From Thalia democratica (taxonomy: Eukaryota): a stretch of DNA of 64,000 nt. Shown one piece after another: positions 4,476 to 59,694 of the stretch. The notes beneath the pieces are model-generated. The model was given only the letters and a program-made list of their open reading frames with translations. It did no database searches and was not told the origin of the DNA. Where the stretch lies: positions 31,000,001 to 31,064,000 of the forward strand of contig OZ241832.1 of assembly GCA_965202585.1 (NCBI GenBank), read 5' to 3'. The first letter of the stretch is position 1; each line of letters opens with the position of its first letter. Both the position numbers and the translations under genes were made by a program.

Positions 4476-6164
4476 TTAATAAATGATCTTTGAATAAAGC
4501 TTCAAATAAATAAAATTGTGTATTAGCGTGATAACATTTTCTACTTAAATATCAAAACTTCCTAAAAAGAAAACAAATTCAATTAAAAAAAGACCTTAAA
4601 TGTTATATATAATGTTTAGTTTCTTTTTTTTTGTTATTTAAAGTCTTATAGTATAATTTTTTATACTCAAGGAAATTTTTTTATATAAATATAACATAGA
4701 TGTGAACCTGGTATTATCAACAATTTTTAAAAGTTAAGTCATTATTTTAAAGTTTACTTTAAATTTTTTATAAGGTTCATTATATACTACTTAGTAAAGT
4801 CTTTAGATCGATGCTAAAATTTTAGTGACATTTAAAACAAATTTTTTGTTTCATAGTTTTATTTAGAATTATTTTCGGTTTAAATTTAAGCCCTAAATTT
4901 TTAAGTTTGGCTTCTAACTTTTTAGGATTATTTGAGTTCAATTGTCATAGCATAAAATTGTTAAAACTTACATTACTTTTTATTTACTTAACAAACATTT
5001 CAATTATTGTGTAACCAGTACAGACACGTGATACTTTTGTTAAGGGTGCGGAAAATTTACAGATATTTAAAAACCTCTTTGTTTGATATTTTAAAAATAA
5101 CTTGTTAAGATTAAAGTGCTACGAATATTAAAAACTTGTAAGTAAAAGATTAAATAATGTGATAAATGTTTCTGTAAATTAGTTCTGGTTAGCATAATAT
5201 ATTTTTCAAGTTAGTATCTGCTTTATTAAGATCCACCCCAAGAAGCCGATAATTATTAAAATACGGTTAAAAGTATTAACTTTCAGGCAATTTGGCAAGA
5301 TATTTAGTATGTTTGTAATTTGCTTAACAAAATAGTAGTCTGATTTTAACCTATAGATTGTTTTGACTTGGAAACGATGTTTTTGTAGTTCTAAAATCAT
5401 TTATTGTCTAAAGCTTTAATGAGGTGGTTTATGTTTTTATTGTAAGTTATGCGTTTTTAAAACTTATTTGTCACAAAATACTAATATCATCTGTTATACT
5501 TTAAAGTTTTGAAGTAATAATCGGTTTTACAAATAAAAGTATGCTCACAAAAAATATCTACAACTATTTTATCGTATTTAGTCTACTTTTTAATTTTTAT
5601 CAAACTTTTAATTTTTAATTGAAAAATTTATTACATGAAAAAGAAAACACAAGTAAAAGTATTTGATTATATGAATTGTAACTAGTTAAGTTAAAGAGAC
5701 CTTCTATAAAATGAAAAGTAAATATAGATCGCATAAGAACTTAAGTAAATAAACTAATTCTAGTTAAAACTTTATTTTTACTACAATATACTAAATTATT
5801 CTGATGTTCTTGGTTTTTAAACAATAACTTCATTAAATAAGCATAATTGTAGAAAATGAAGATAATTTTATTTTAATTTGTAGTTATTTAAAATACATTA
5901 TAATGCTAATGAATTTACGCATAAACAATAATGAAGAGCAAATTAAATGATGTTGCTGATGATTTAAAATTAAAGCAAGATTGCAAAAAATAAAATAGAA
6001 ATAAACAAGCATTTTTTTACTATTTCTTACATTTTTAGTTTGACCACAATAACAAAGTTTCTGTATACACGGAATATTTTATGAATATTAGATTCTGTAG
6101 ACTGCAGAGACTAGGTTTTAGTCACTGCACTCAATTGCTTTGTCTTTTAAATTCTTTAGTTTGA

Positions 6165-6355
6165 TCAATGATGTCTCGAGTTATGAATCAAAGTATTTCG
6201 TGCTGATGCTTGATTTTCCTGAAAATTTATTTTTGAAGATGCTCCGGTGTTTTTGACTTGATTGATACCAGTATTTCCGACTAATTGATGATTATTTTGC
6301 ATATTTTGTATTTGTTGGTTGTTATAATGTTAAACAGTTTTAGACAGTATATTGC
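6165..6355 (-). pseudogene. 3' remnant of the multi-homeobox gene (internally deleted copy)
   Basis: Translates as ...IITNQQIQNMQNNHQLVGNTGINQVKNTGASSKINFQENQASARNTLIHNSRHH*. This aligns to the C-terminus of 40013-41098 (NERLQRIQNRQLAENSGNNQIQNNQASSRRHSQGNQASAQNNQTQSLGHHG). The 3' flank 5000-6150 is also homologous to about 38.9-40.0 kb and 55.1-55.9 kb. Confidence 0.8.
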
Positions 6356-24640: not shown

Positions 24641-26690
24641 AACCTGAACAAAAATTACTGCGACATTTTAGCACAGAGCGACATCTTGCACAGAGTTAAT
24701 TTTTTTTTTTTTTCTATGCTTAAATAATATTTGTACTATTATATTTAAAAACTTAAAAAAAGAACTATGCAACATGTAAAATAAAAGTTTAAAAGCGTTA
24801 AATGAGTTACGAGTTTAGGCTTTAATAAAATTTAAAAGAAAGTAAATTTACAAACTTTATCAAATATATAAATTTGAATTATATAATTTGAAACATCTAC
24901 TTTAAAATCTTCTTTTACTTTATTATTTTTTATCTATTTTATCAACATAAAACCATTTTACAAAGCTAGCAATATATACAAGCACTAGGATTCCTAAAAA
25001 AATTTAAAAGACTAAAGACTATTTTTATAATGTTAAACTTAACCGTAAAATTAAAATAAAAGGCGATATATATAGAGGTTAAAAACTTCCTTATTTTATT
25101 TATCAAATACATATAGTTTTAAACGTCATATTACAAAACAAATTTAAATCCTCTTATTTCTACATGCACGCATCTCGAATCTCGTTTTATGCTTATCTAT
25201 GTGTTATAAAAATTATATTTGATAAATCTATTATATCTGAAAGAAAAAAATTGTTAATTAAACAAAAAAAGAACTATTATGTAAAATGCTTAAAAATACT
25301 GTTTTTGATAACAGTATAAACTAATATAAAATTTACTTGTGCAAACTAGTCTTTAGAACATAGCTATGATCTATGTGGCATTTAAAACAAAATTGTTATT
25401 TCATTGTTTTATTTTGAATTATGTTATGATCTAATTTAACCCTATACTTTTGAGTTTGGTTTATTTGAGTTTAATTGCAGTTAAACTGTTAAAACTTAAA
25501 TTGCTTTTTATAAACTTAACAAACATTTCAATTACTTTGTGAACTAGTACAGACACGTGGTATTTTTGTTAATGGTGCGGAAATTTTACAGATATTTAAA
25601 AGATCCATTAACTTAATATTAAAAAAAAAATTGTTAAGATTAAAGCACTAAAAATAGTAAAAAATTTAAAGTAAAAGATAAATTAATGTGATAAATATTT
25701 CTGATAATTAGTTCTCTAAGCATTATTAAAACTCAACAAAAGCAGTTGCTTATAATATACGTTTGAAAGTATTAATATTTAAGTAATTCGGCAAGATATT
25801 TTATACTTAATACATTTATATTTAGCTTAACAAAAGAATAATTTTATTTTATTTTTATATATTGTTTTGATTTAGATACAATGTTTTTGTTGTTTGAAAA
25901 TCACCTAATGTCTAAAAAATTAACAAGCTGATTTATGTTTTTTGTCTTAAATATGCGTTTTTAAAATGTATTTCTCATAAAATATTAATATTTATTAGTT
26001 ATAACTATAAGTTTTGAAGTAATGATTGGTTTTTTAACTAGAAGTATACTTACTAATAATATCTACAATATTATTATATATCTAAATAATATTATGTTAT
26101 CTAGATTCTAGTCTACTAATAGTTTCTATCAAAGTTTAACTTTTCAATAGATAAACTTATTACATGAATAAGAAAACACAAGTAAAAAGTATATAATTGT
26201 ATATTTTGTTACTAGTAAAGTTAAACAGAACTTCTATAAAATGAGAAATAAATATAAATCGCATAAAAAATTTAGTAAAAAAATATATTCTGGTTACAAT
26301 TTTTTTTACTACAAAAAATTGAATTATTATGATAATCATGGTTTTTTCAACAATAACTCCATTAAACAGGCATAATTGTAGAAGATGAAGATAATTTTTT
26401 TTTAAATTATAGTTATTTAAAATACATTGTGAGGCTATTAAATTTACGCATAATTATGAAGAGCAAATTAATAGATGTTGCTGATGATTTAAAATTAAAG
26501 CAAGAATGCAAAAAATTAAAGTAGAAATATACAAGCTTTTTTTTTTACTTTTTTTTTATTTTAACTTAACCACAATACCAAAGTTTCTGTATACACGGAA
26601 TATTTTATGAATATTAGACGCTGCCGACTGCAGATACTTGGTTTTGGTAGCTGCACTCAATTGCTTTGTCTTTTAAATTCTTTGGTTTGA

Positions 26691-26885
26691 TCAATGATGT
26701 CTCGAGTTATAAATCAAAATATTTCGTTCTGATGCTTGATGTTCTTGAGAATTTATTTTTGAAGATGCTTTGTTGTTTTTGACTTGATTGATACCAGTAT
26801 TTCCGAATAATTGATGATTATTTTGCACATTTTATTGGTGTTGGTTGTTATAATGTTAAACAGTTTTAGACAGTATATTGCTTAA
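26691..26885 (-). pseudogene. 3' remnant of the multi-homeobox gene (duplicate of 6165-6355)
   Basis: Aligns to 6165-6355, with an extra 1-bp indel and an in-frame TAA. Confidence 0.75.
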
Positions 26886-37700: not shown

Positions 37701-40012
37701 TGTCGACGAATGGTGTTTTTTATATACAGCTGGGAGGTAGTTTCTGCAAATCTGCAGAAACGTATACTTGTATGCAAAAAAAAATTGCTTTTATTTCAAC
37801 TTGAAAATACTCTGCTCAGCTTTTAGTATCAGTTTTGCACTCCTGGGAGATAATTTTGACATATATGCACTCTTTAGCATTTGTAGTCTCGCAAAGATTA
37901 AACGAATTAAATTTATTTAGCGCGTTAAAGCTTTAATTTGACAAAAAGCTGCATTGAAAAATTGAGTTTAATGAAAGCTGTAGCTTCAAAAATCAAAATC
38001 ATACAATTTTATGTTACAAAAGTTTGCATAATTTGTTGTTACTATTGACTACATTAAATGTTTCATTTTCAAAACAATATAAATGTTTTTGAGTGAAATT
38101 GTGATATTCGTATACATACTTATTTTAAATGAAAATATTTTGGGTTTACACAAGTGGCAACACATAAAGAGTCATAGGGGTTGTGGAGCAAAATAAATTA
38201 CCTTGTATACAGTTATTACTCGTAATTCAACATTCCATTTTCGATGTATTAACACAACTGCATCGTTTCAGATTAAACTAAATGATATTAAACGTAGTTT
38301 AAATTGCCGTGTTCCCGCTAGGACGTTATCACGCGTCATTTCAGATGTTTTAGTTTTTGTAGATTCGTAACTTTTTTGAGCTAGCTACGTCCCTAATACA
38401 CAGCAAATACATACAAGCATCTTAAAAACCCAAATTTGATACTTTGAAAGTAATCTAAGGAAACAAAATGCAACAAATTGTTAGAGAGCAAAAGTCTATA
38501 AGTTTTTTTTTACAGTTTTTTTTACATGCTATAATAAGGTTTTTAATTTTTCTAGGTAGAGCGTCTGCTCCAAAAATCCACGCCAAGTTTGGTTAAAATA
38601 ATTTAGGTTAGTGTTAGGAAGGGTCTGATTGAAACGTTGAGGTGTTTCCCCTAATATTTGCAGAGTCACTAAGTCCATGTTTTTTTTTGCAAAATTTTTA
38701 ATAAAGTTGTAATTTGATTGTTTTATTTTAAAAATCTGGTTCAAACTCTATCCCTAAACTTCTTAATTAAGGTTTTAACTAATTAGGATTAATTAAGTTG
38801 AAAAAACTTTAATCATCATAGCTGAAATATTCTTTTAATTAAAATTGTATTAATAGACTTAGCACACATTTTAATTATTGTGTAGCCGGTAACGACTTGT
38901 AAACGAGGAAAATTTACAAGTATTTAAGAGACCGCTTAATTTAATTCTTTTCAAAAAATTTTAATAAGAATTAAGTACCATAACAACTATAAAACATTGT
39001 AAATAAAACTTAAATTAATCTGATTAATACTTCTAAGTTCTGCTAAGCATTAAATTTTTTCAAGTTAGCATCTGCTTCGATAAGTACATACCCAAGTCAC
39101 TGCTTACTAGTTAATGGTTGAAACTTAAATTATCATAAAAGATATACAACAAAATATTTACTGTTTATTAATTTTTCAACTTGCTTAAAAAAATAAAATA
39201 AGGATGTGATTTTTCTCCTGAAGATTGTTTTGGTAAGGAACCGATGATTTATAATTGTAATAAATTTTTACTACCTTGAAGATAAATGATAAGTGAGCTT
39301 ACATATACTTATTATCACAACTTTTGCTGTTTGTAAACTTTACTTATTACAACATTCCATAGTTTACAAGTTATACATTAAATTTTGGAATTAAAAATCG
39401 GTTTTTTGAATTGAAATATTCCAACAAAAATATCTTCAATTATATTATAAGATCCAGTCTACTTTTAAGTTTCTATCAAACTAGCAATTTTAGAAGAAAA
39501 AACATTACATAAACAAATCCAAGTATTTTGTTAATGGTTATATGAATCGTAAATAATAAATATAAAAAAGAGAACTTCTACAAAATAAATAACAATTATT
39601 ATACAAAAGCTTTAGAGGGATTTTTTTATGTTTTCTACGGTTTTAAACTACAAAATAATAAAGTATAATATTGTTCAAAATTTTTAGAAAACTATAATTT
39701 CGTTAAGCAGGCATATTTAAATAAGATGAAAACAAGTTTAAATTTTTTTTATTTTAAGTTATTAAAAAAGAAGTTCAAAGCAAGTAAAATTACGAATTAA
39801 TTGTAATTAGGAGCAACTTGTTAGATGATGCCAACGATTCGAATTTCAAGCAAGATTATAAAACAGTTAAAATAGAAATAAATAAGAATTTTTAATTTTT
39901 TTTCAATTAAATCATAATAACTGAGTTTCTCAACACAAAGGTTATTTTATGAACATAAGAAACCTAAAAGACTTGATTTTGGTAACTGCACTCGATTTAA
40001 TTTCTTTGTCGT

Positions 40013-41540
40013 TTAAATTCCTGGGTTTGATCCGTGATGTCCTAAACTCTGAGTCTGATTATTTTGTGCTGATGCTTGGTTTCCCTGAGAATGTCTTCTT
40101 GAAGATGCTTGGTTGTTTTGAATTTGATTGTTACCACTATTTTCAGCAAGTTGTCTGTTTTGTATTCTTTGCAAACGTTCATTACTAAAGTGCACTGCGA
40201 TTTTATAGAGAAAACCGTTAATGTTCGGCGTAGGCCTTATCTGGTTCAAAAAGTTGCAGTAGTTTACATGGTTTTGGTAGTGGTAGTCATAAATATCAGC
40301 AAAGCGATTTGTTCGATGAATGTTGTAAACATTTAAAGGAACGTTAGGCGTACTGTTTATTATAGGTTGGTTTTGATAAAGCTGATTTGATGCACTGCTT
40401 ACATCTTGTTGATTAACTCGATTTGTTGTATTACTAACTGCCGAAGTAAAAGGCTCACTATTCGCTGTTGACAAACGTCGAGCGCTTTGAAGTTTTTTTA
40501 AAAGTCTTTGATATTTAATATCTGGCTCATCCAAATCCTTTATGTTATAAAACCAAATTTCAACTTTTAACTCGTCAATACCAATTTCTCTCGCTATCTC
40601 TTTCATTTTTTCAACTGACAACTCTTTGACATTGCAGTGCTTTTCAAAGGACTCTTCTAATGTTCGCTTTTCATTTTCACTGTACTCAACCATCCGAAAA
40701 AACGAGCTTTGTATTTTAAGACGTTTTCTTCTGCTTTGAAAGTATCGAAAGACTGCCAGTTTTTCCGCTTTTAGTATCTGGCTCATAGTAGCATATTCTG
40801 GTAATGACGGTTTTGGGTTCAAACTAAAGTACACTTTCGCCAATGGAATTTGATTTCTCTCGAAAATTCTTTTCCTCAAGTCCATTCTATTCATTTTACT
40901 GAACCATTTCGACACAAAATCTCTACTTTTCCCAGTCATTTCAGACAAAAAGTTAATATCAGTTTCTTTCGGGTGCATATTGTCAAGAAAAAATCTGGCG
41001 AGCAGTTTTTCGCAACGTTCGTCGTCACTCAAAGAAGTTTCTCGACTGCTTTTATTAAGCGTGCTTGTCAATGAGACGTCTGGTGATTCTTGAGTCAAAT
41101 CAATTACATTGGATCCTACTAAAGAAAAAGTTTGAGGTTTTTTTTAATTTTTTTAATTAATGGTATGACTTGAGGTATTTTGTCTGCAATTTTGCTAGTA
41201 GATGGTATGTCTTGAGGTTTTTGTTTGTAAATTTACTAGTGGATGGTATGTCTTGAGGCCTTTCGTATGCAAATTTACTAGTGGATAGTTTGTCTTGAGG
41301 CCTTTCATCTGCAAATTTACTAGTTGATGGTATGTCTTGAGGTCTTTCATTTGCAAATTTACTAGTTGATGGTATGTCTTGAGGACTTTCGTATGCAAAT
41401 TTACTAGCATATGTTATGTCATGAGGTCTTTCGTTTGAAAATTTGCTAGTTGAAGGTATGTCTGCAGACTTACATTTATAAATATTTTCCGAAAAAAAAC
41501 TTGAAGAAGATTCACAGCTACCTTTTAAAATTTTATACAT
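40013..41540 (-). CDS. Divergent triple-homeodomain protein with N-terminal 14-aa tandem repeats and a SIM; about 510 aa if two 1-bp homopolymer deletions are corrected, otherwise a young pseudogene
   Basis: Three homeodomain folds in ORF 40013-41098: L..FF.DNMHP......L...TG.....V.KWF (F20/P26/W48 spacing), L...YF..NP.P...........V..YFQSRRKR, and YSENEKRTLEESF...........IAREIG.....VEIWFYN. ORF 41157-41540 joins it in the paralog at 55931-57343, where both parts are in one frame. Confidence 0.8.
41161..41466 (-). repeat. Coding minisatellite, 42-bp / 14-aa unit (ERPQDIPSTSKFAx), about 7.5 copies
   Basis: Repeated forward-strand unit aaatttactagt(t/g)gatggtatgtcttgagg(t/c)ctttc; translated repeats are visible in the ORF track. 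Confidence 0.95.
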
Positions 41541-44500
41541 TTTTTGATTTGAGCGTTTACTAGATTTTTTTGGGGTTTTGTAATTGGTTTTCTTAGAAAT
41601 TTAGTTGGAAAATTTGAAATACTTGATTTTTAGTTTATAACTACTAAAAATTTAAATAAATAAGATTTAAAAACTTATACTTTTACTTTAAACTTTAAAA
41701 TTAAAGCTAATACAGATCTAGTTTGGCTATTATTACGTAAATTAGTTTCATGTCTATTACTTTTAAAGTTATGATGAAAATTTCCAAAAATTTATACCGT
41801 TTTTTAAGATAAGTTATGTTTATTGATTTACTTAAATTTATACTAGATAGATAAATAGCCTCAATAAAGTTTAATCTTATTATTCAACTAAAAAACATAT
41901 TAAACTTTGAATAAATTAAAAGTAAAATTTGTGTTTTTAAATAATACCTTTTAACTACTGCTAAATAGACAAGTAAGTAAAAACAAACTAACTACCCAAA
42001 AAAGTTTGATTCTTTTCATTACTTGAGGGTGGTTTACCAGTGCTTTCGTTAAATGCTAAAAAAGTTTTTTTTTTTAATTTTTTTATTTTTTTCACTATGT
42101 AATAAAAAGTATATTTCTAAATAAAGGTTTTTATAAAATATGAAGAGACACTGTAGCCTGAAATGGTAAGTTTTTGGTGTGACTAGAGCACACAACACGC
42201 AAACTACTTACTTTTTTTTATATATAAAACTAAGAAATTATAATTTTTCAAAAAAATATTTATAAAATAAATTAATTTAGACTTTATTTTTATACATAAG
42301 AAATGTTACATAGTTGCTTTTAAAATATTTCTATACAACTGGTAATTAAATACTCATGCTATTTCTTTTAAAATTTGTCAAAGTTATGAAACAAAAAATT
42401 TAAAATAAAGCTATTTTATTTTAAAAAATAAAAGTATATTAGAAAAAAAGTTTGTATTTTCAGGTTTATTTATTATTTTTAAAAACATTGTTTAAATGTT
42501 TTGACTCATAATACTAAAAATAAAACTCCTACAATATCTTCACGTAATAAAAGTATGACATAAAATAAATCGTAGGTGTTGAATTTAAATAAAATATAAT
42601 CACAAAATTACTCTTTTATATGTAGTAAAATTTTGTACATTAATACAACTAAATTCCCATAACTGCTACAATGCTCCAGAGTCCAGACCATACTTGGTTA
42701 AAACCATAATTGTAAGTGTTAGAAAGGGTCCGATTGAAACGTTGAGGTGTTTCCTCGAATATTAGCAGAGTCAGAAAACTTTCAAAAGCCTTTTTAAAAT
42801 TTTTTTTTAACTTATATTCTTATCACTAACCCATCTTAATCAAACACATTAAATATAACAAAAAAAAAAATCATAAAAAAAAACTCATTAAATTTACCGA
42901 CTTCGCAAATATTAGGGACAACACATTAATGTTTCAACAAGACTCAGAAAAAAAAATCCTTTGCAGTAAAATTTTAGCTTTTACTTTAATTAATTTAAGT
43001 TCTACTGCCGAGAATTGTTTAACAGTAAACACAGTGATTTATACCAAGTTTTCTCAACACTAGTAGCGCTACTGGTAGATATATATAAGTAAAGTTTTCC
43101 TAGACATCATCTTAACTTTTAATTCTTTTTAAAATTATTACAGTTTTAGTTTTACTGTCAGATTTAATTCAGATCGGTTAAAAATAATTAGTCTGAATCA
43201 GATTTCAAATTCAAATAACCGTGAATACTGAACAATCGTATTAAGTTGTTTTTCGATGCACGAGTAATTTAAGCAGGTTTTCCTCCTAATCTGGCAATTA
43301 TGCTCTGAAGTTTGAATAAAAGATTGGAATTTTAAATAAAATAGTTGTAAAATTTGTTAAGACTTACTTTTTATCGCTTTGTACACCAAATCTTACACCA
43401 AATATTTTATAAACTTATAACAAACATCAAAATTAATATTTGTTTTTAGGAAAATCTTTGATTTTCTATAAATAGTCTAGTTTTTTGAAGGTTTTTGCTA
43501 TCTTATAACTTTAATTATAACTTTTCTTAACATATTATAGTCAATATAAATGTTCCCCTCAAATTACTTTACAAAAATTTACAAGTCACACTAGTGCTGG
43601 ACATTTTTAACACTAAATTTTATCAACCTACCATTTTCAAGAAATATCTTGCCATTTTTTCATATATGTAAATAATTAATGCAGTTCTAATTTTCTAGTT
43701 TTATAATTTTTTTTATAAGTATTAAGTTAAAATTCAGATAAAACAGGTGTTAGTTGTAATGATTGTATGTTAAGTTTGAAATATAAAATGATTGCTATAA
43801 GTAAGTAAGTGTTTTGAATAAATAGTTTTTAGATGTCATAGTAAAACAAGGTTTACATATAATTAACATTTCTATATTAATTAACCTGATAAATTGTAAT
43901 AAACACCCTTAAATATGCTATTTTCGTTTTCATACAGTGTGATACTTTAATATTATATAATATTCTATCAAAAAAATTTTGATTTAACTACAGCTATATA
44001 ATTTAATGATTTAAGGAAAAAGATGATAGATTTTAAAACACATTCTATGATATTTATTTTGTAGCAATAAAAAAAATACAAGGCTGTTTAAAAAGTCTAT
44101 ATAAAAGTTTTATTAATTTTAATTCTTTTTATCATATAAGTTATCTCAACTTCTATAAATACTTCCATTATTTTTTTTTGTAAGAAATACAAATCTTATT
44201 TAGTTCGTTGTAAATATTAGATAAATAACCAATATACTGTTAATAGATACTGAACCTAGTTACACTATAATAAAAATTTTAGTTATTTTGTACTTAGTAA
44301 AACATTTTCTAATAGTTTTGTTGTGTCTTAAAATTTGTTTTACTTCGTCATTTTTGTTAAGGTAAGCTAAGAATATTTTTTATAGAACTTTATGTTAACT
44401 GCATTATTAAAATCATATCATTTAAAATAAAAGTATAACTTTTAGCTACTTGACTTAAGAATGAGTAAATAAATTAACAATGCTTTTTTAGATATAAGAA

Positions 44501-55400: not shown

Positions 55401-55930
55401 TTAGAAATACTAAATGTAAGCAATTTTAAAAAATGTCTAGAACATAGTAAGTTTATGATTTGCTTAAAAATCTTAAGATTTAACTTTTTCTAAAGATTAT
55501 TTTGGTAAGGAACCGATGATTTTATTGATTCAAAAACACTTACTGTCTTAAAAATAATAAGGTGACTTTTACTTATTACCACAAATCTTGCTACTTGTAA
55601 ACTTTGTTTAATACAACATAGTATAGTTCACAAGTTATACTTTAAAGTTCTGAAGTAACAATCTGTTTTTTAATTGAAATATACTAACAAATAATATCTT
55701 CAATTATATTATAACATCCAGTCTACTTTTAAGTTTTTATAAAACTAGTATTTTTAGTAGAATAACCACTATGTAAACGAAACCAAATATTTTATTTATA
55801 GTTATATGAATCGTAACTAATAACGTTAAAAAAACTTTTACAAAGTAAAGAATAGAGAAATATTTTAAAAACAATAAAAACTTCAAAGACTTGATTTGGG
55901 TACCTGCACTCAATTTAATTTCTTTGTCGT

Positions 55931-57343
55931 TCAAATTCCTGGGTTTGATCCGTGATGTCCTAAACTGTGAGTCTGATTATTTTGTGCTGATGCTTGGTTT
56001 CCCTGAGAATGTTTTCTTGAAGATGCTTGGTTGTTTTGAATTTGATTGTTACCACTACTTTCAGCAAGTTGTCTGTTTTGCATTCGTTGCAAACGTTCAT
56101 TAGTAAAGTGCACTGCGATTTGATAGAGAAAACCGTTAATATTCGGCGTAGGCTGTATCTGGTTCAAAAAGTTGCAGTAGTTTACATGGTTTTGTTAGTG
56201 GTAGTCATAATCATCAGCAACGCGAATTGTTTGATGAATGTTGTAAACATTTAAAGGAATGTTGGGCGTACTGTTTATTATTGGTTGGTTTTGAAAAAGC
56301 TGATTTGATGAACTGCTTAGATCTTGTTGATTAACTCGATTTGTTGTATTACTAACTGCGGAAGTTGAAGGTTCACTATCCGCTTTTAACAAACGTCGAG
56401 CTCTTTGGTGTTTGTTTATAAATCTTTGATATTTAATTTCTGGCTCATCCAAATCCTTTATATTATAGAACCAAATTTCAATTTTTAACTCGTCAATACC
56501 AATTTCTCTCGCTATCTCTTTCATTTTTTCAACTGGCAACTCTTTGACATTGCAGTACTTTTCAAAGGACTCTTCCAATGTTCGCTTTTCATTTTCGCTG
56601 TACTCAAACGTGTAAGCAACCGAGCTTTGTATTTTGAGTTTTTTTCTTCTGTTTTGAAAGTATCGAAAGACTGCCAGTTTTTATGCTTTCAATACGCGGC
56701 TTATAGTAGCATATTCTGATAGTGGCGGTTTTGGGTTTAAACTAAAATACACTTTTGTTAATGGAACTTGATTTTTCTCCAAATTTTTTCTTCCCAAACT
56801 CATTCTATGCATTTTATTGAACCATTTCCACAAAAAGTCTCTGCTTTCCCCAGTAATATCTGACAAAAAGTTAATATCAGTGTCTTTCGGGTACATATTG
56901 TCAAGAAAGAATTTGGCCAGCAGTTTTTCGCAACGTTCGTCGTCACTCAAAGAAGTTTCTCGACTGCTGGTATTCAGCGTGCTTGTCAATGAAACGTCTG
57001 GTGATTCTTGAGTCAGATCAATTACATTGGATCCTGCTAGAGGAAGAGTTAGAGGTTTTTAAAGTTTTTTAATGGACTGTATGTCTTGAGGTCTTTCTTT
57101 TACAAGTTTGCTAATAGATGGTAATTTAGATGGTATGTCTTGAGGTCTTTCGTCTGTAAATTTGCTAGTCGACATCATGTCTTTAGGTTTTTCGTCTGAA
57201 AATTTACTAGTGGATGGTATTTCTTGAGGTCTTTCGTCTGCTAATTTGCTTGTTGACGGTATGTCTGATGACTTAAAACTGTTAAGATTATCTGAAAAAC
57301 AACTTGAAGAAGCTCCACTGCAATCTTTTGAAATTTTATACAT
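55931..57343 (-). pseudogene. Second full-length copy of the triple-homeodomain gene, with three in-frame TAA codons
   Basis: ORF-track fragments 57059-57343, 56681-56989, 56195-56578 and 55931-56167 all lie in one frame. The stops at 57059, 56681 and 56195 align to AAA, GAA and TAT in the 41-kb copy. Confidence 0.9.
57070..57270 (-). repeat. Coding 42-bp minisatellite (ERPQ.IPSTSKF), about 4.5 copies with an internal 12-bp insertion
   Basis: Translated repeats in ORF 57059-57343. Confidence 0.9.
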
Positions 57344-59694
57344 TTTTTTGATTTGAGCGTTTATTAGTTTTCGTTGGGGTTTTGTAATTGGATTTTCTGG
57401 AAATTTAGTTATTTAGTTTTAAGTACTTAATTTTTTTTTTATAGTTGAATAGAAGTGTGCAAATTAAACACTTTATTTACGACCCGGTTTTGAAACCGGA
57501 CAAGTGCACACTACTATTCAAATAAGCTTTTTACATAAAGTAAATTGAGCAATCATTTTAGATAAGAAAAATAACTGTATAGTTTATAGGTATCAGAAAA
57601 TTTTAATGAAATAAAATTTATAAAACTATACTTGTAATTTAAACCTTAAAATTAACTTTGTGTAGCTAGAAATACAGATTTTTACTAAATATATTTTGAT
57701 TTTTGTTACGTAATTAGTTTTATATAAAACACTTATAAAGTTATGATGAAATCTTCCTAAAATTTATACTTTTTTATTAGGGTAAGTTATGTTTATTGAT
57801 TTACTTAAATTTATACTAAAAAGATAAATAGCCTCAATAAAGTTTAATCTTATTATTCAACTAAAATACATGTTAAACTCTAAATTAAATAAAAAGTTAA
57901 ATGTTATTTTTAAAATATTACCTTTTAATTAAAGATAAATAGAAAAGCAAGTAAAAATAAACTAACTATTCAAAAACTTTTGATTATATTCATTACTTGA
58001 GGGTGCTTTACCAGTGCTTTCGTTGAACGCTAAAAAAATTTATATTTTTTTATTTTACTACCTAATAAAAAGTAAATTTCTAAACAATGCTACTTACTTA
58101 TCTTTCTAGTCACAATTTTAAAGTTATCAAATTCTTTATATTGTTTTGAGATATTTTAATTTCACACAATTTTGTTGCAATATTTTCAATGTCTTGTTGT
58201 TGTTTTAAAAGTTCTCTTTGTATTTGCGATAGTTTTTCCTCGACAGCTAAAGGAATATTAGTTTTTTGAAACCTTTAATATGTTTTAATGCTTTTCAATG
58301 ACTTTCAATAACTTTTTTAAATAACCTAAACAGTTTTATGGCTATTTAAACTGTTATTGTTATACAAACTGTTTGGTATTTAAAAGAAAAACATAAAGCA
58401 AAAAGTAAAAACATATATAAGAAATATATTAACCAATTAAAAAAAAATATTTTAAATAATTTTTTTAACATAATATATATAAAAAATAAATTGTATTTAT
58501 ATAAGTAAGTGTAAGTATATATAAGTATGTAAGAGTGCTTTGCAAATAACTTGAAACAAAAGCGATAATTAAAATATTTTTTTGAAAGTAGTTAAGAGCT
58601 TTTTACACAAAGTTTGATCATTCCATAATTATAATGAGTTGTATCACATTAGTGTAGACTTTTTTATTTTATAAACTAAGATAATAATTGAAAATGTAGC
58701 AGGCACTTTTTTTAAAATGACACTAAACTTGTAAATAAAAAACACTAATTTGCTAAGTGAAATATTTAAAATAAACATCTACGTGATTTAAACCAAAGCG
58801 CTTGCATTGTTTTATTGACTACTATTGCAAATTTACAACACGCTTTTGTAAATAAACAATTTTCAGCTAACTTGATCTTATATCTAACTAACTCACTAAG
58901 AGGCAAGTGTTGCACTGGATGTTCAACTAATGATACTATTGTTAAACAAAAAGTATTTAAAAAAGCTTATGAAAAAAGTCTACACTTGTTTAGTCTAAAC
59001 TGAAAAAATTATTATATTATTTTAAATATATTAAAATATTTATAAATATTTAAAATTTAAAAAATTATTACATATTTTACAAGGTACAACTCATAATTCG
59101 AATAGTAGTAGAATCGTTAACAGAAAATAATTTTAATGTTTTCTTAAAAATATACTTTACAGTTTTTAGTTAAAAATTTTAGTTTTTATTTTTAGTATTA
59201 GTTGAAAAACTATTATTTTTGGTGCTTTTAAAACTGTATGGTCACATTTTAAAATATTTTATAATTTTAGCACTTTCGAATAAAACAGAATTTATTTTTT
59301 ATTTCATACTTCGTAAAGTTAGAATTTATTTCATCAATTATTAAAAAAATTGTGCACAAGTTAAAATTTATTAAATGATTTATACTGTGCTTTAGACGAA
59401 TTGAAACAAACTAATCAATTTAATTCAAAAGTAACTTTATTTTACTATTTTAAACATTGTTAACAAAATTTAAACATATTCTGAACTAACAAAGTTTATT
59501 TAAATTTTTACAAAGGACTTTACAATAAATGATTACAGTTTTATATTTTGTATTTTAACTTGTAGACCATAAGTATTCTTTAAAGTTCGTAATTCTTTTT
59601 ATTTATAGTAATAAGTAGAAACTGTTAGATTGACAATTTTTCTAAGTGGTTTCCGCAAGCTAAAAAAAAACTTTTTTTACACTTTTAATTTTAA

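Follow-up and report, generated by a model that had tools for sequence, protein, structure and literature searches.

What kind of gene lies behind three consecutive homeobox-like segments on the minus strand of Thalia democratica contig OZ241832.1, and is the copy seen here still a gene? The stretch of DNA analysed (64,000 nt, contig positions 31,000,001 to 31,064,000; hereafter the window) was described in an earlier note, made from the sequence alone, as carrying three abutting, individually divergent homeodomains (HDs) at 40520-41050, and as evidence of a lineage-specific multi-homeodomain class with a TALE-like extension in one domain and a retrogene-like origin. Combining comparison of family copies, profile searches, structure prediction and public read data, we find that these segments are probably the homeobox portion of a large third exon, in one copy of an undescribed gene family restricted to a single lineage, and that this copy is probably an unprocessed pseudogene of recent origin within a tandemly duplicated cassette; the judgement applies to the explanation as a whole, pseudogene status included. 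All coordinates are those of the window, and HD residue numbers follow canonical homeodomain numbering.

Three homeodomain units in one open frame

The triple homeobox lies in an open frame of 376 codons within the large exon, which is exon 3 of the family gene model described below. The frame ends at the stop codon 40013-40015, is closed upstream by a TAA at 41146-41144, and contains a VIDLTQES motif, the three HDs and a tail rich in Gln and Asn. The window has about 25% G+C, a composition at which stop codons are frequent; in the 2-kb bin that holds the open reading frame (ORF) the value rises to 31%.

40013..41143, minus strand: 376-codon open frame within the large exon
40868..41047, minus strand: HD1 (Pfam on this unit alone 15.5 bits, family profile against PDB, structure alignment, family alignment)
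40706..40885, minus strand: HD2 (Pfam 23.4 bits, profile against PDB, structure alignment, family alignments, read contigs at 40734)
40523..40705, minus strand: HD3 (Pfam 34.5 bits, profile against PDB, structure alignment; loop length compared among paralogs)

Independent numbering of the translation places the three divergent, abutting units where they had been reported, and Pfam PF00046 recognizes three stretches in the whole ORF (55.1 bits, E 6.5e-15). HD1 retains F20, P26, W48 and F49 and has Lys at position 51, all as previously listed and all read directly from the translation; it also has N53. HD2 starts immediately after, with the reported YFQSRR (Y48, F49, Q50, S51, R52, R53). The two units overlap by about 5 residues, the end of HD1 helix 3 coinciding with the N-terminal arm of HD2, and the distance from W48 to Y48 is 54 residues, indicating that HD1 and HD2 truly abut. 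HD3 has W48, F49, Y50 and N51, with 31 rather than the canonical 28 positions from F20 to W48, as confirmed by the translation and by its placement on the Pfam profile (47 residues over positions 7-50). It is 63 residues long, carries an insertion of 3 residues between helix 1 and helix 2, and has an acidic, short end to helix 3. The statement that HD3 lacks basic residues after N51 holds only in part: N51 is present, but K53 stands after it as the sole basic residue. The DNA-contact residues N51 and R53 are not kept together in any of the units, which have K51/N53 (HD1), S51/R53 (HD2) and N51/K53 (HD3).

The helix-turn-helix fold of HD1 and HD2, on which the earlier reading depended, is supported by both profile searches and AlphaFold2. 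Tested singly against the curated PF00046 cut-off of 22.9 bits, HD3 (34.5 bits) and HD2 (23.4 bits) score above it and HD1 (15.5 bits) below. Used against the sequences in PDB, a family profile of HD1 found only homeodomains (SIX1 at 6e-4, ZHX3 at 1e-3, Oct-1 at 1.5e-3); that of HD2 found plant PDF2 (4e-7), POU6F1 (5e-6) and Oct4 (7e-6), and that of HD3 found DUX4 (6e-5) and Exd/PBX (2e-4) besides spurious matches to repeat proteins. An AlphaFold2 model of the triple-HD segment, built on a 14-sequence family alignment, has a mean predicted local distance difference test score of 84.9 and a predicted template modelling score of 0.77, and consists of three three-helix units. These superpose on solved homeodomains as follows (rmsd, root-mean-square deviation):

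HD1, model residues 11-60, on MATa1: Z 9.1, rmsd 1.4 A over 49
HD1, model residues 11-60, on engrailed: Z 9.0, rmsd 1.8 A over 50
HD2, model residues 64-114, on DUX4 HD2: Z 9.3, rmsd 0.8 A over 50
HD3, model residues 124-180, on the Oct-1 homeodomain: Z 8.4, rmsd 1.8 A over 54

The best two-domain structural match is the solved DUX4 double homeodomain, which aligns to HD2 plus HD3 of the model with Z 8.8 over 105 residues (Foldseek probability 1.0). A Foldseek search of PDB with the whole three-domain model gave no match at E <= 0.001, so that domain-wise alignment was needed, and the best result of an ESM Atlas feature search (0.79, to homeodomain-only and DUX clusters) was under the level that counts. 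Taken together, the Pfam matches, the family profiles and the AlphaFold2 superpositions lead us to assign a predicted homeodomain fold to all three units, the highly divergent HD1 and HD2 included.

A family in the genome and in ocean DNA

A search of the species' own 802-Mb genome with the 180-residue triple-HD segment gave at least 36 matching places. At least nine of these, 75-88% identical, are found on contig C8 in the 0.9 Mb surrounding the window; the others, on C5, C6, C9 and elsewhere on C8, are 27-51% identical and keep the three HDs colinear. In the distant paralogs the HDs lie inside open frames of 400-670 codons. Outside the genome, 10 matches below E 1e-30 came from a profile search covering 1.8 billion representative proteins. 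The five of these that were looked up (P0001, P0002, P0004, P0005 and P0007) are all unnamed, and all four that were traced to their contigs (P0001-P0004) come from ocean metagenome assemblies, three of them from Tara Oceans. A direct homologous-protein search with the window protein returned a single unnamed metagenome protein. No named close relative was present among 30 representative matches looked up; the named matches are only weak, generic multi-HD arrays, from Timema (stick insects), an Ovis DUX-like array, Basidiobolus (a fungus) and diatoms, and the weaker matches also include a metagenome protein with 16 HDs. The triple-HD genes thus appear to be a lineage-specific multi-homeodomain family, undescribed in the libraries searched. 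To this extent the class proposed in the earlier note is borne out by the 36 genomic places and by outside relatives that are only unnamed ocean or metagenome proteins, while its TALE and retrogene components are not, as discussed below.

Conservation within the family is highest in HD2, where 10 alignment columns are invariant (among them F20, R53 and the LxAE[KR]L turn); R53 is invariant in no other unit. Position 51 is variable in all three HDs. No paralog has Asn at this position in HD1; in HD2 it is N, S, I, T, E, V, K or Y, and in HD3 it is N, K, S, C or M. Given this variability in every unit, non-canonical DNA recognition by the family may fairly be supposed. The Ser at position 51 of HD2 in the window copy (codon AGC at 40735-40733) is private to it among 19 family sequences, and all other C8 copies have Asn. 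Every public read contig covering position 40734 likewise gives an Asn codon, not Ser. No RNA run turned up in a search of public sequencing runs for the window. The four runs compared consist of DNA-like contigs in which intergenic DNA is covered as well, and they contain 0.13-0.28 of the window's sampled words and may derive from another individual or haplotype; with so low a share, the window's own haplotype at 40734 may be absent from the reads.

A three-exon gene with two conserved 5' introns

Most paralog open frames are without a start codon and begin at a conserved ...LGKSI[AT]KPQK motif, whose LG overlaps a TAG/G acceptor (a slash marks the splice junction here and below). Comparison of the upstream DNA of divergent paralogs (contigs C5, C6, C8 and C9) identified two small conserved 5' exons. 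Exon 1 provides the Met start and about 60 residues, with hydrophobic residues at 11, 15, 18, 22, 29, 32, 36 and 39 and Gln at 25, a four-heptad a/d pattern; exon 2 has 60 nt, encodes 20 residues and is of phase 1-1. L011, L010, L012, L022 and L007 agree in the phase-1 GTAAGT donor, in an exon 2 of 60 nt and in the AG acceptors; even between paralogs of 30-50% identity the 5' exons are kept, together with their GT-AG sites and in matching phase. An exon 1 profile compared with the genome detected 18 places, each adjoining a triple-HD place on the upstream side of the gene. Exons 1 and 2 were not found on the metagenome contigs, which are too short to show them. From its heptad spacing alone, the exon 1 helix may dimerise; a homodimer prediction with two copies of the L011 helix, run without controls, scored 0.02, a value that counts neither for nor against pairing.

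Intact members are accordingly modelled with three exons, one large exon holding all three HDs. The large exon contains, in order, the KSITKPQK motif, at least one PSTSKF motif, often a [VI]IDLTQ motif, the three HDs, a long Q/N-rich tail and a C-terminal family motif, NIDKLxxF. The [VI]IDLTQ motif resembles SUMO-interaction motifs. PSTSKF, a conserved short linear motif, is present in one to three copies in distant paralogs and as an array of 7.3 units in the window copy, having been multiplied within the C8 cluster.

This gene structure bears on the proposal of a retrogene-like origin. The homeobox region is indeed intronless, but the gene has two conserved 5' introns, with exon 1 present at 18 loci, and these introns, their GT-AG sites and the matching phase are at odds with a processed retrogene. 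The fuller form of the same proposal, in which HD3 is a TALE-class homeodomain and the gene a retrocopy, is very improbable. As in the homeodomains of PBX, MEIS and TGIF, three residues are added at the TALE position, after helix 1 and before helix 2, giving HD3 a length of 63 residues, and HD3 can be aligned to Exd/PBX from end to end with no gap; the lack of an intron in the homeobox region would suit a retrocopy. However, the insertion is absent from the L024/L016/P0004 subgroup and from the outgroups L020 and L014, and is 8 residues longer in L012/P0003. HD3 has no PYP motif at positions 24-26, and Pfam Homeobox_KN (PF05920) does not match it and on HD1 stays below its cut-off of 24 bits, at 14-17 bits; the two 5' introns again speak against a retrocopy. 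Because its length varies within the family, the insertion is better explained as a labile loop than as TALE ancestry, with the polarity of the insertion taken from outgroup comparison only, as the base of the family tree is without resolution. What survives of the TALE-like extension is the insertion itself, confined to HD3, together with the absence of PYP that had already been noted.

Damage in the window copy

Measured against the three-exon model, the window copy is without exon 1, and upstream of the HDs its reading frame is lost. The relevant features, from the 5' end of the gene onward, are these:

42204..42211, minus strand: relic of the exon 1 donor (gtaagtag); unrelated AT-rich DNA stands before it
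41996..42055, minus strand: exon 2 (60 nt, ...FNESTGKPPSSNEKNQTF...), flanked by an AG acceptor at 42057-42056 and a GT donor at 41995-41994
41591..41594, minus strand: exon 3 acceptor with a G-to-A change, TAAG/A as compared with TAG/G in L013 (direct reading)
41539..41545, minus strand: 1-nt deletion in an A run before the ATG of a 127-codon ORF; other copies keep the base
41160..41463, minus strand: 7.3 tandem copies of a 42-nt unit (14 residues, PSTSKFxxERPQDI), with the frame broken in the last units
41220..41225, minus strand: 1-nt deletion (frameshift) within the repeat array, at about 41222 (copy comparison and read contig)
41141..41147, minus strand: A run with two nucleotides too many, a frameshift with an in-frame TAA after it (comparison with L007, L003 and L013)
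40016..40519, minus strand: Q/N-rich C-terminal tail; no Pfam match; ratio of nonsynonymous to synonymous substitution rates (dN/dS) 0.65-1.36

Neither tblastn nor the genome-wide exon 1 profile found an exon 1 near the window copy. Similarity to all other copies stops at 42124, and comparison with the second copy in the window (55.9-58.3 kb) shows that about 2.6 kb, including exon 1, are missing. The G-to-A change at the exon 3 acceptor moves the AG by one base and thereby puts the large exon out of phase. Downstream of it, the deletion at 41539..41545 shifts the frame relative to a conserved upstream KPITKPQ motif, other copies having an extra base at 41539. Reads confirm the deletion at 41220..41225: a contig from run X1, at single-copy depth, is identical to 41161-41339. 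The surplus at 41141..41147 was established against copies with a continuous frame (L007, L003 and L013). The three frame-shifting indels upstream of the HDs (-1, -1 and +2) leave the TAA at 41146-41144 in the homeobox frame, where the earliest in-frame ATG is found inside HD1. At the other end, the C-terminal motif (NIDKLxxF...) of the window copy occurs out of frame only, past the stop, at about 39945-40028; since the whole C8 cluster, window copy included, ends in ...GHHGSNPGI, the loss of this motif is cluster-wide. It is the combined loss of exon 1 and of the upstream reading frame, neither of which figured in the earlier note, that leads us to regard the window copy as a probable pseudogene.

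An intron between the repeat array and the homeobox ORF was also considered and was rejected, as other copies read straight through. Three runs have many read contigs that end at 41138-41160 and leave loose ends to either side; the family copies differ there in sequence or length.

Neighbouring copies and selection

Stops or frameshifts in the HD region are present in five of the eight other copies of the C8 cluster (L003, L005, L006, L008 and L009), and L007 may be the sole intact C8 copy. The other family remains in the window are these:

55861-58268, minus strand: second window copy, L006, about 88% identical over the large exon
4830-6276 and 26091-26802, minus strand: older relics of the C-terminal tail and downstream DNA, 66-68% identical to 38694-40142

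L006 has exon 1 at 58116-58268 with its ATG changed to AGG, and a TAA in HD2, and is likewise a pseudogene. The older relics contain several stops, with the family C-terminal motif (...SNIHKIFRVYRNF) still visible. The window contains at least four generations of one duplicated cassette.

Among the C8 copies, dN/dS of the HD region is 0.26-0.6, with an upper bound of at most 1 in five of six bootstrapped pairs, which indicates past constraint on the homeodomains; the tail evolves at a dN/dS of about 1 among neighbouring copies (0.65-1.36). An intact distant member, L012, compared with its metagenome counterpart gives 0.33. For the window copy and its closest paralog, L002 (94% nucleotide identity), the HD region gives 0.6 (bootstrap 0.30-1.78), a value compatible with recent loss of constraint. 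Synonymous divergence of the window copy from L003-L007 is uneven along the exon, about 0.07-0.12 in the tail (40016-40519) and 0.25-0.27 in the homeobox (40520-41059), which suggests gene conversion or a mosaic history.

These data also allow the opposite view to be weighed, that the window copy is still a working gene, either making a shorter triple-HD protein from another promoter and start, or bearing frameshifts that are assembly errors. We consider this unlikely. In its favour, no stop interrupts the 376 codons of the HD frame, comparison with most copies gives an HD-region dN/dS under 1, and the indels lie in homopolymer runs. A route to such a protein would be cryptic splicing from a GTAAAT in the repeat array to the AG at 41120-41119: by direct reading, each repeat unit has a phase-1 donor, CTA/GTAAAT, that would join in frame to a tttctttag acceptor at 41119. 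This supposed acceptor is, however, ordinary coding sequence in other copies. Exon 1, the sole conserved start, is deleted, the earliest in-frame ATG of the HD frame falls inside HD1, and an exactly matching read contig confirms one of the frameshifts. Decay is plain in most neighbouring copies, and at about 6% divergence from L002 an open frame would survive by chance fairly often; with so little divergence, the open frame is weak evidence of function.

Pseudogene status is therefore the preferred reading, and several points should be set against it. The homeobox frame is intact over its 376 codons and the terminal branch of the window copy in the family tree is short (0.039). All of the small indels are in A/T runs, where assembly errors are common, and one is confirmed by reads. 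The dN/dS of 0.6 relative to L002 has an interval that spans 1 and fits relaxed or ongoing selection alike. Both the putative silence of the window copy and the presumed expression of the family are read from DNA only.

Relationship to known multi-homeodomain genes

HOMEZ has three HDs and a leucine zipper, and some HDs of the ZHX/HOMEZ family probably work in contacts with proteins and not in reading DNA. The possibility that the family is a much diverged tunicate offshoot of chordate ZHX/HOMEZ, with atypical HDs and HD-mediated dimerisation, deserves consideration, although we judge it improbable. The two groups share multiple atypical homeodomains, all in one exon; ZHX1-3 homeodomains are among the weak PDB matches of HD1; and L020, a triple-HD relative of more canonical type, scores 25.4 bits with Pfam Homez, over the cut-off of 21. 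ZHX is reported in chordates including Ciona and lancelet (PMC7144352). The evidence from the triple-HD genes themselves points elsewhere. No C2H2 zinc finger was found in the exons examined (by Pfam in the window ORF and ten paralog frames, and by the lack of a Cys/His pattern in exons 1 and 2), and the coiled coil predicted here is N-terminal, in an exon of its own. At E about 1e-3, the matches of HD1 to ZHX do not surpass its matches to SIX1, Oct-1, LHX9 or TGIF, while the HD2 and HD3 profiles favour POU, DUX and PBX, ZHX3 reaching only E 0.64 for HD2. None of the 30 representative matches looked up is ZHX-like. Pfam Homez did not match the window protein, and a Homez search of the species' own genome, which was not informative, gave no match. 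With neither zinc fingers nor ZHX-specific similarity, the alternative raised in the earlier note, membership in ZHX, is not supported by the sequences, and a remote relationship is possible.

The mammalian DUX genes resemble the family in having tandem HDs on a short linker and in forming amplified tandem arrays with many dead copies. They differ from it in having two HDs rather than three, and the triple-HD genes are not PRD-class by sequence and would be of independent origin.

In nematodes and mammals, lineage-specific multi-homeodomain genes have been connected with programmes of early development that evolve fast. The nearest counterpart in kind is the set ceh-99, ceh-100, ceh-83 and duxl-1 of Caenorhabditis elegans, which are lineage-specific multi-homeodomain genes (Hench et al. 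2015, PMC4448998). As in the family described here, their HDs are divergent and follow one another without a linker (units down to 55 residues there, 54-residue spacing here), orthologues are absent beyond a narrow lineage, and the genes lie in duplication-rich regions with fast turnover (PMC4448998). No sequence kinship between the two groups has been demonstrated. Unlike the C. elegans genes, the triple-HD family keeps a fixed three-HD unit across paralogs of 30-50% identity, and has an N-terminal heptad-repeat exon and conserved short motifs.

Proposed function and evolution

In the explanation that we favour, the family proteins would be nuclear DNA-binding regulators. HD2, having kept its hydrophobic core and an invariant R53, would make the main DNA contact, while HD1 and HD3, whose recognition helices are degenerate, could serve as auxiliary or protein-binding modules; the N-terminal helix encoded by exon 1 would pair two chains. 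The base-reading positions 50, 51 and 54 would be free to vary, so that specificity could be relaxed or could change quickly between paralogs. The tandemly duplicated cassette would evolve by birth and death, and the homeobox frame of the window copy would still be open simply because the damage is recent. Counting against this proposal, DNA binding, dimerisation and a division of labour among the HDs are all deduced from sequence, and classical DNA binding by HD2 may be uncertain, as R5 of the N-terminal arm and N51 are variable even in that unit.

A more far-reaching version, which we offer as speculation and think doubtful, is that the genes form a new class of homeobox genes confined to one lineage of pelagic marine animals. 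Such proteins would combine an N-terminal coiled coil with a fixed set of three HD folds that have no need of Asn51, intact members would bind to DNA as dimers with six HDs in all and with composite, fast-evolving recognition, and the tandem amplification of the genes, with its rapid turnover of copies, would reflect selection for new specificities. Selection of this kind has been proposed for DUX, Obox and Rhox of mammals, and the same driver is suggested here for the tandem amplification of the triple-HD genes.

With a three-HD unit that is fixed and the nearly universal Asn51 free to vary in every unit, the family would be a natural test case for homeodomain function without canonical base reading, and also for the sharing of tasks among tandem domains. 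For annotation, the window locus should be called a pseudogene copy, and intact members (e.g., L010, L011, L012, L022 and L024) have two short 5' exons of the kind that automated callers miss.

Other multi-homeodomain genes in the searches

The searches also returned several more canonical multi-HD genes of the same genome that are weakly colinear with the triple-HD family and often have Ser, Lys or His at position 51. L015 (C7:51309000-51318000) has 6 HDs in a single frame of 918 codons, and L019 (C99) has 5 in a single frame of 486 codons; L020 and L014 (C6:73.43-73.45 Mb) have 3 HDs each, in single frames of 407 and 1383 codons. Two marine metagenome proteins, each on a single short contig, carry larger arrays: P0007, of 1666 residues, has 16 Pfam homeodomain stretches, and P0016, of 705 residues, has C2H2 fingers followed by 6 homeodomains.

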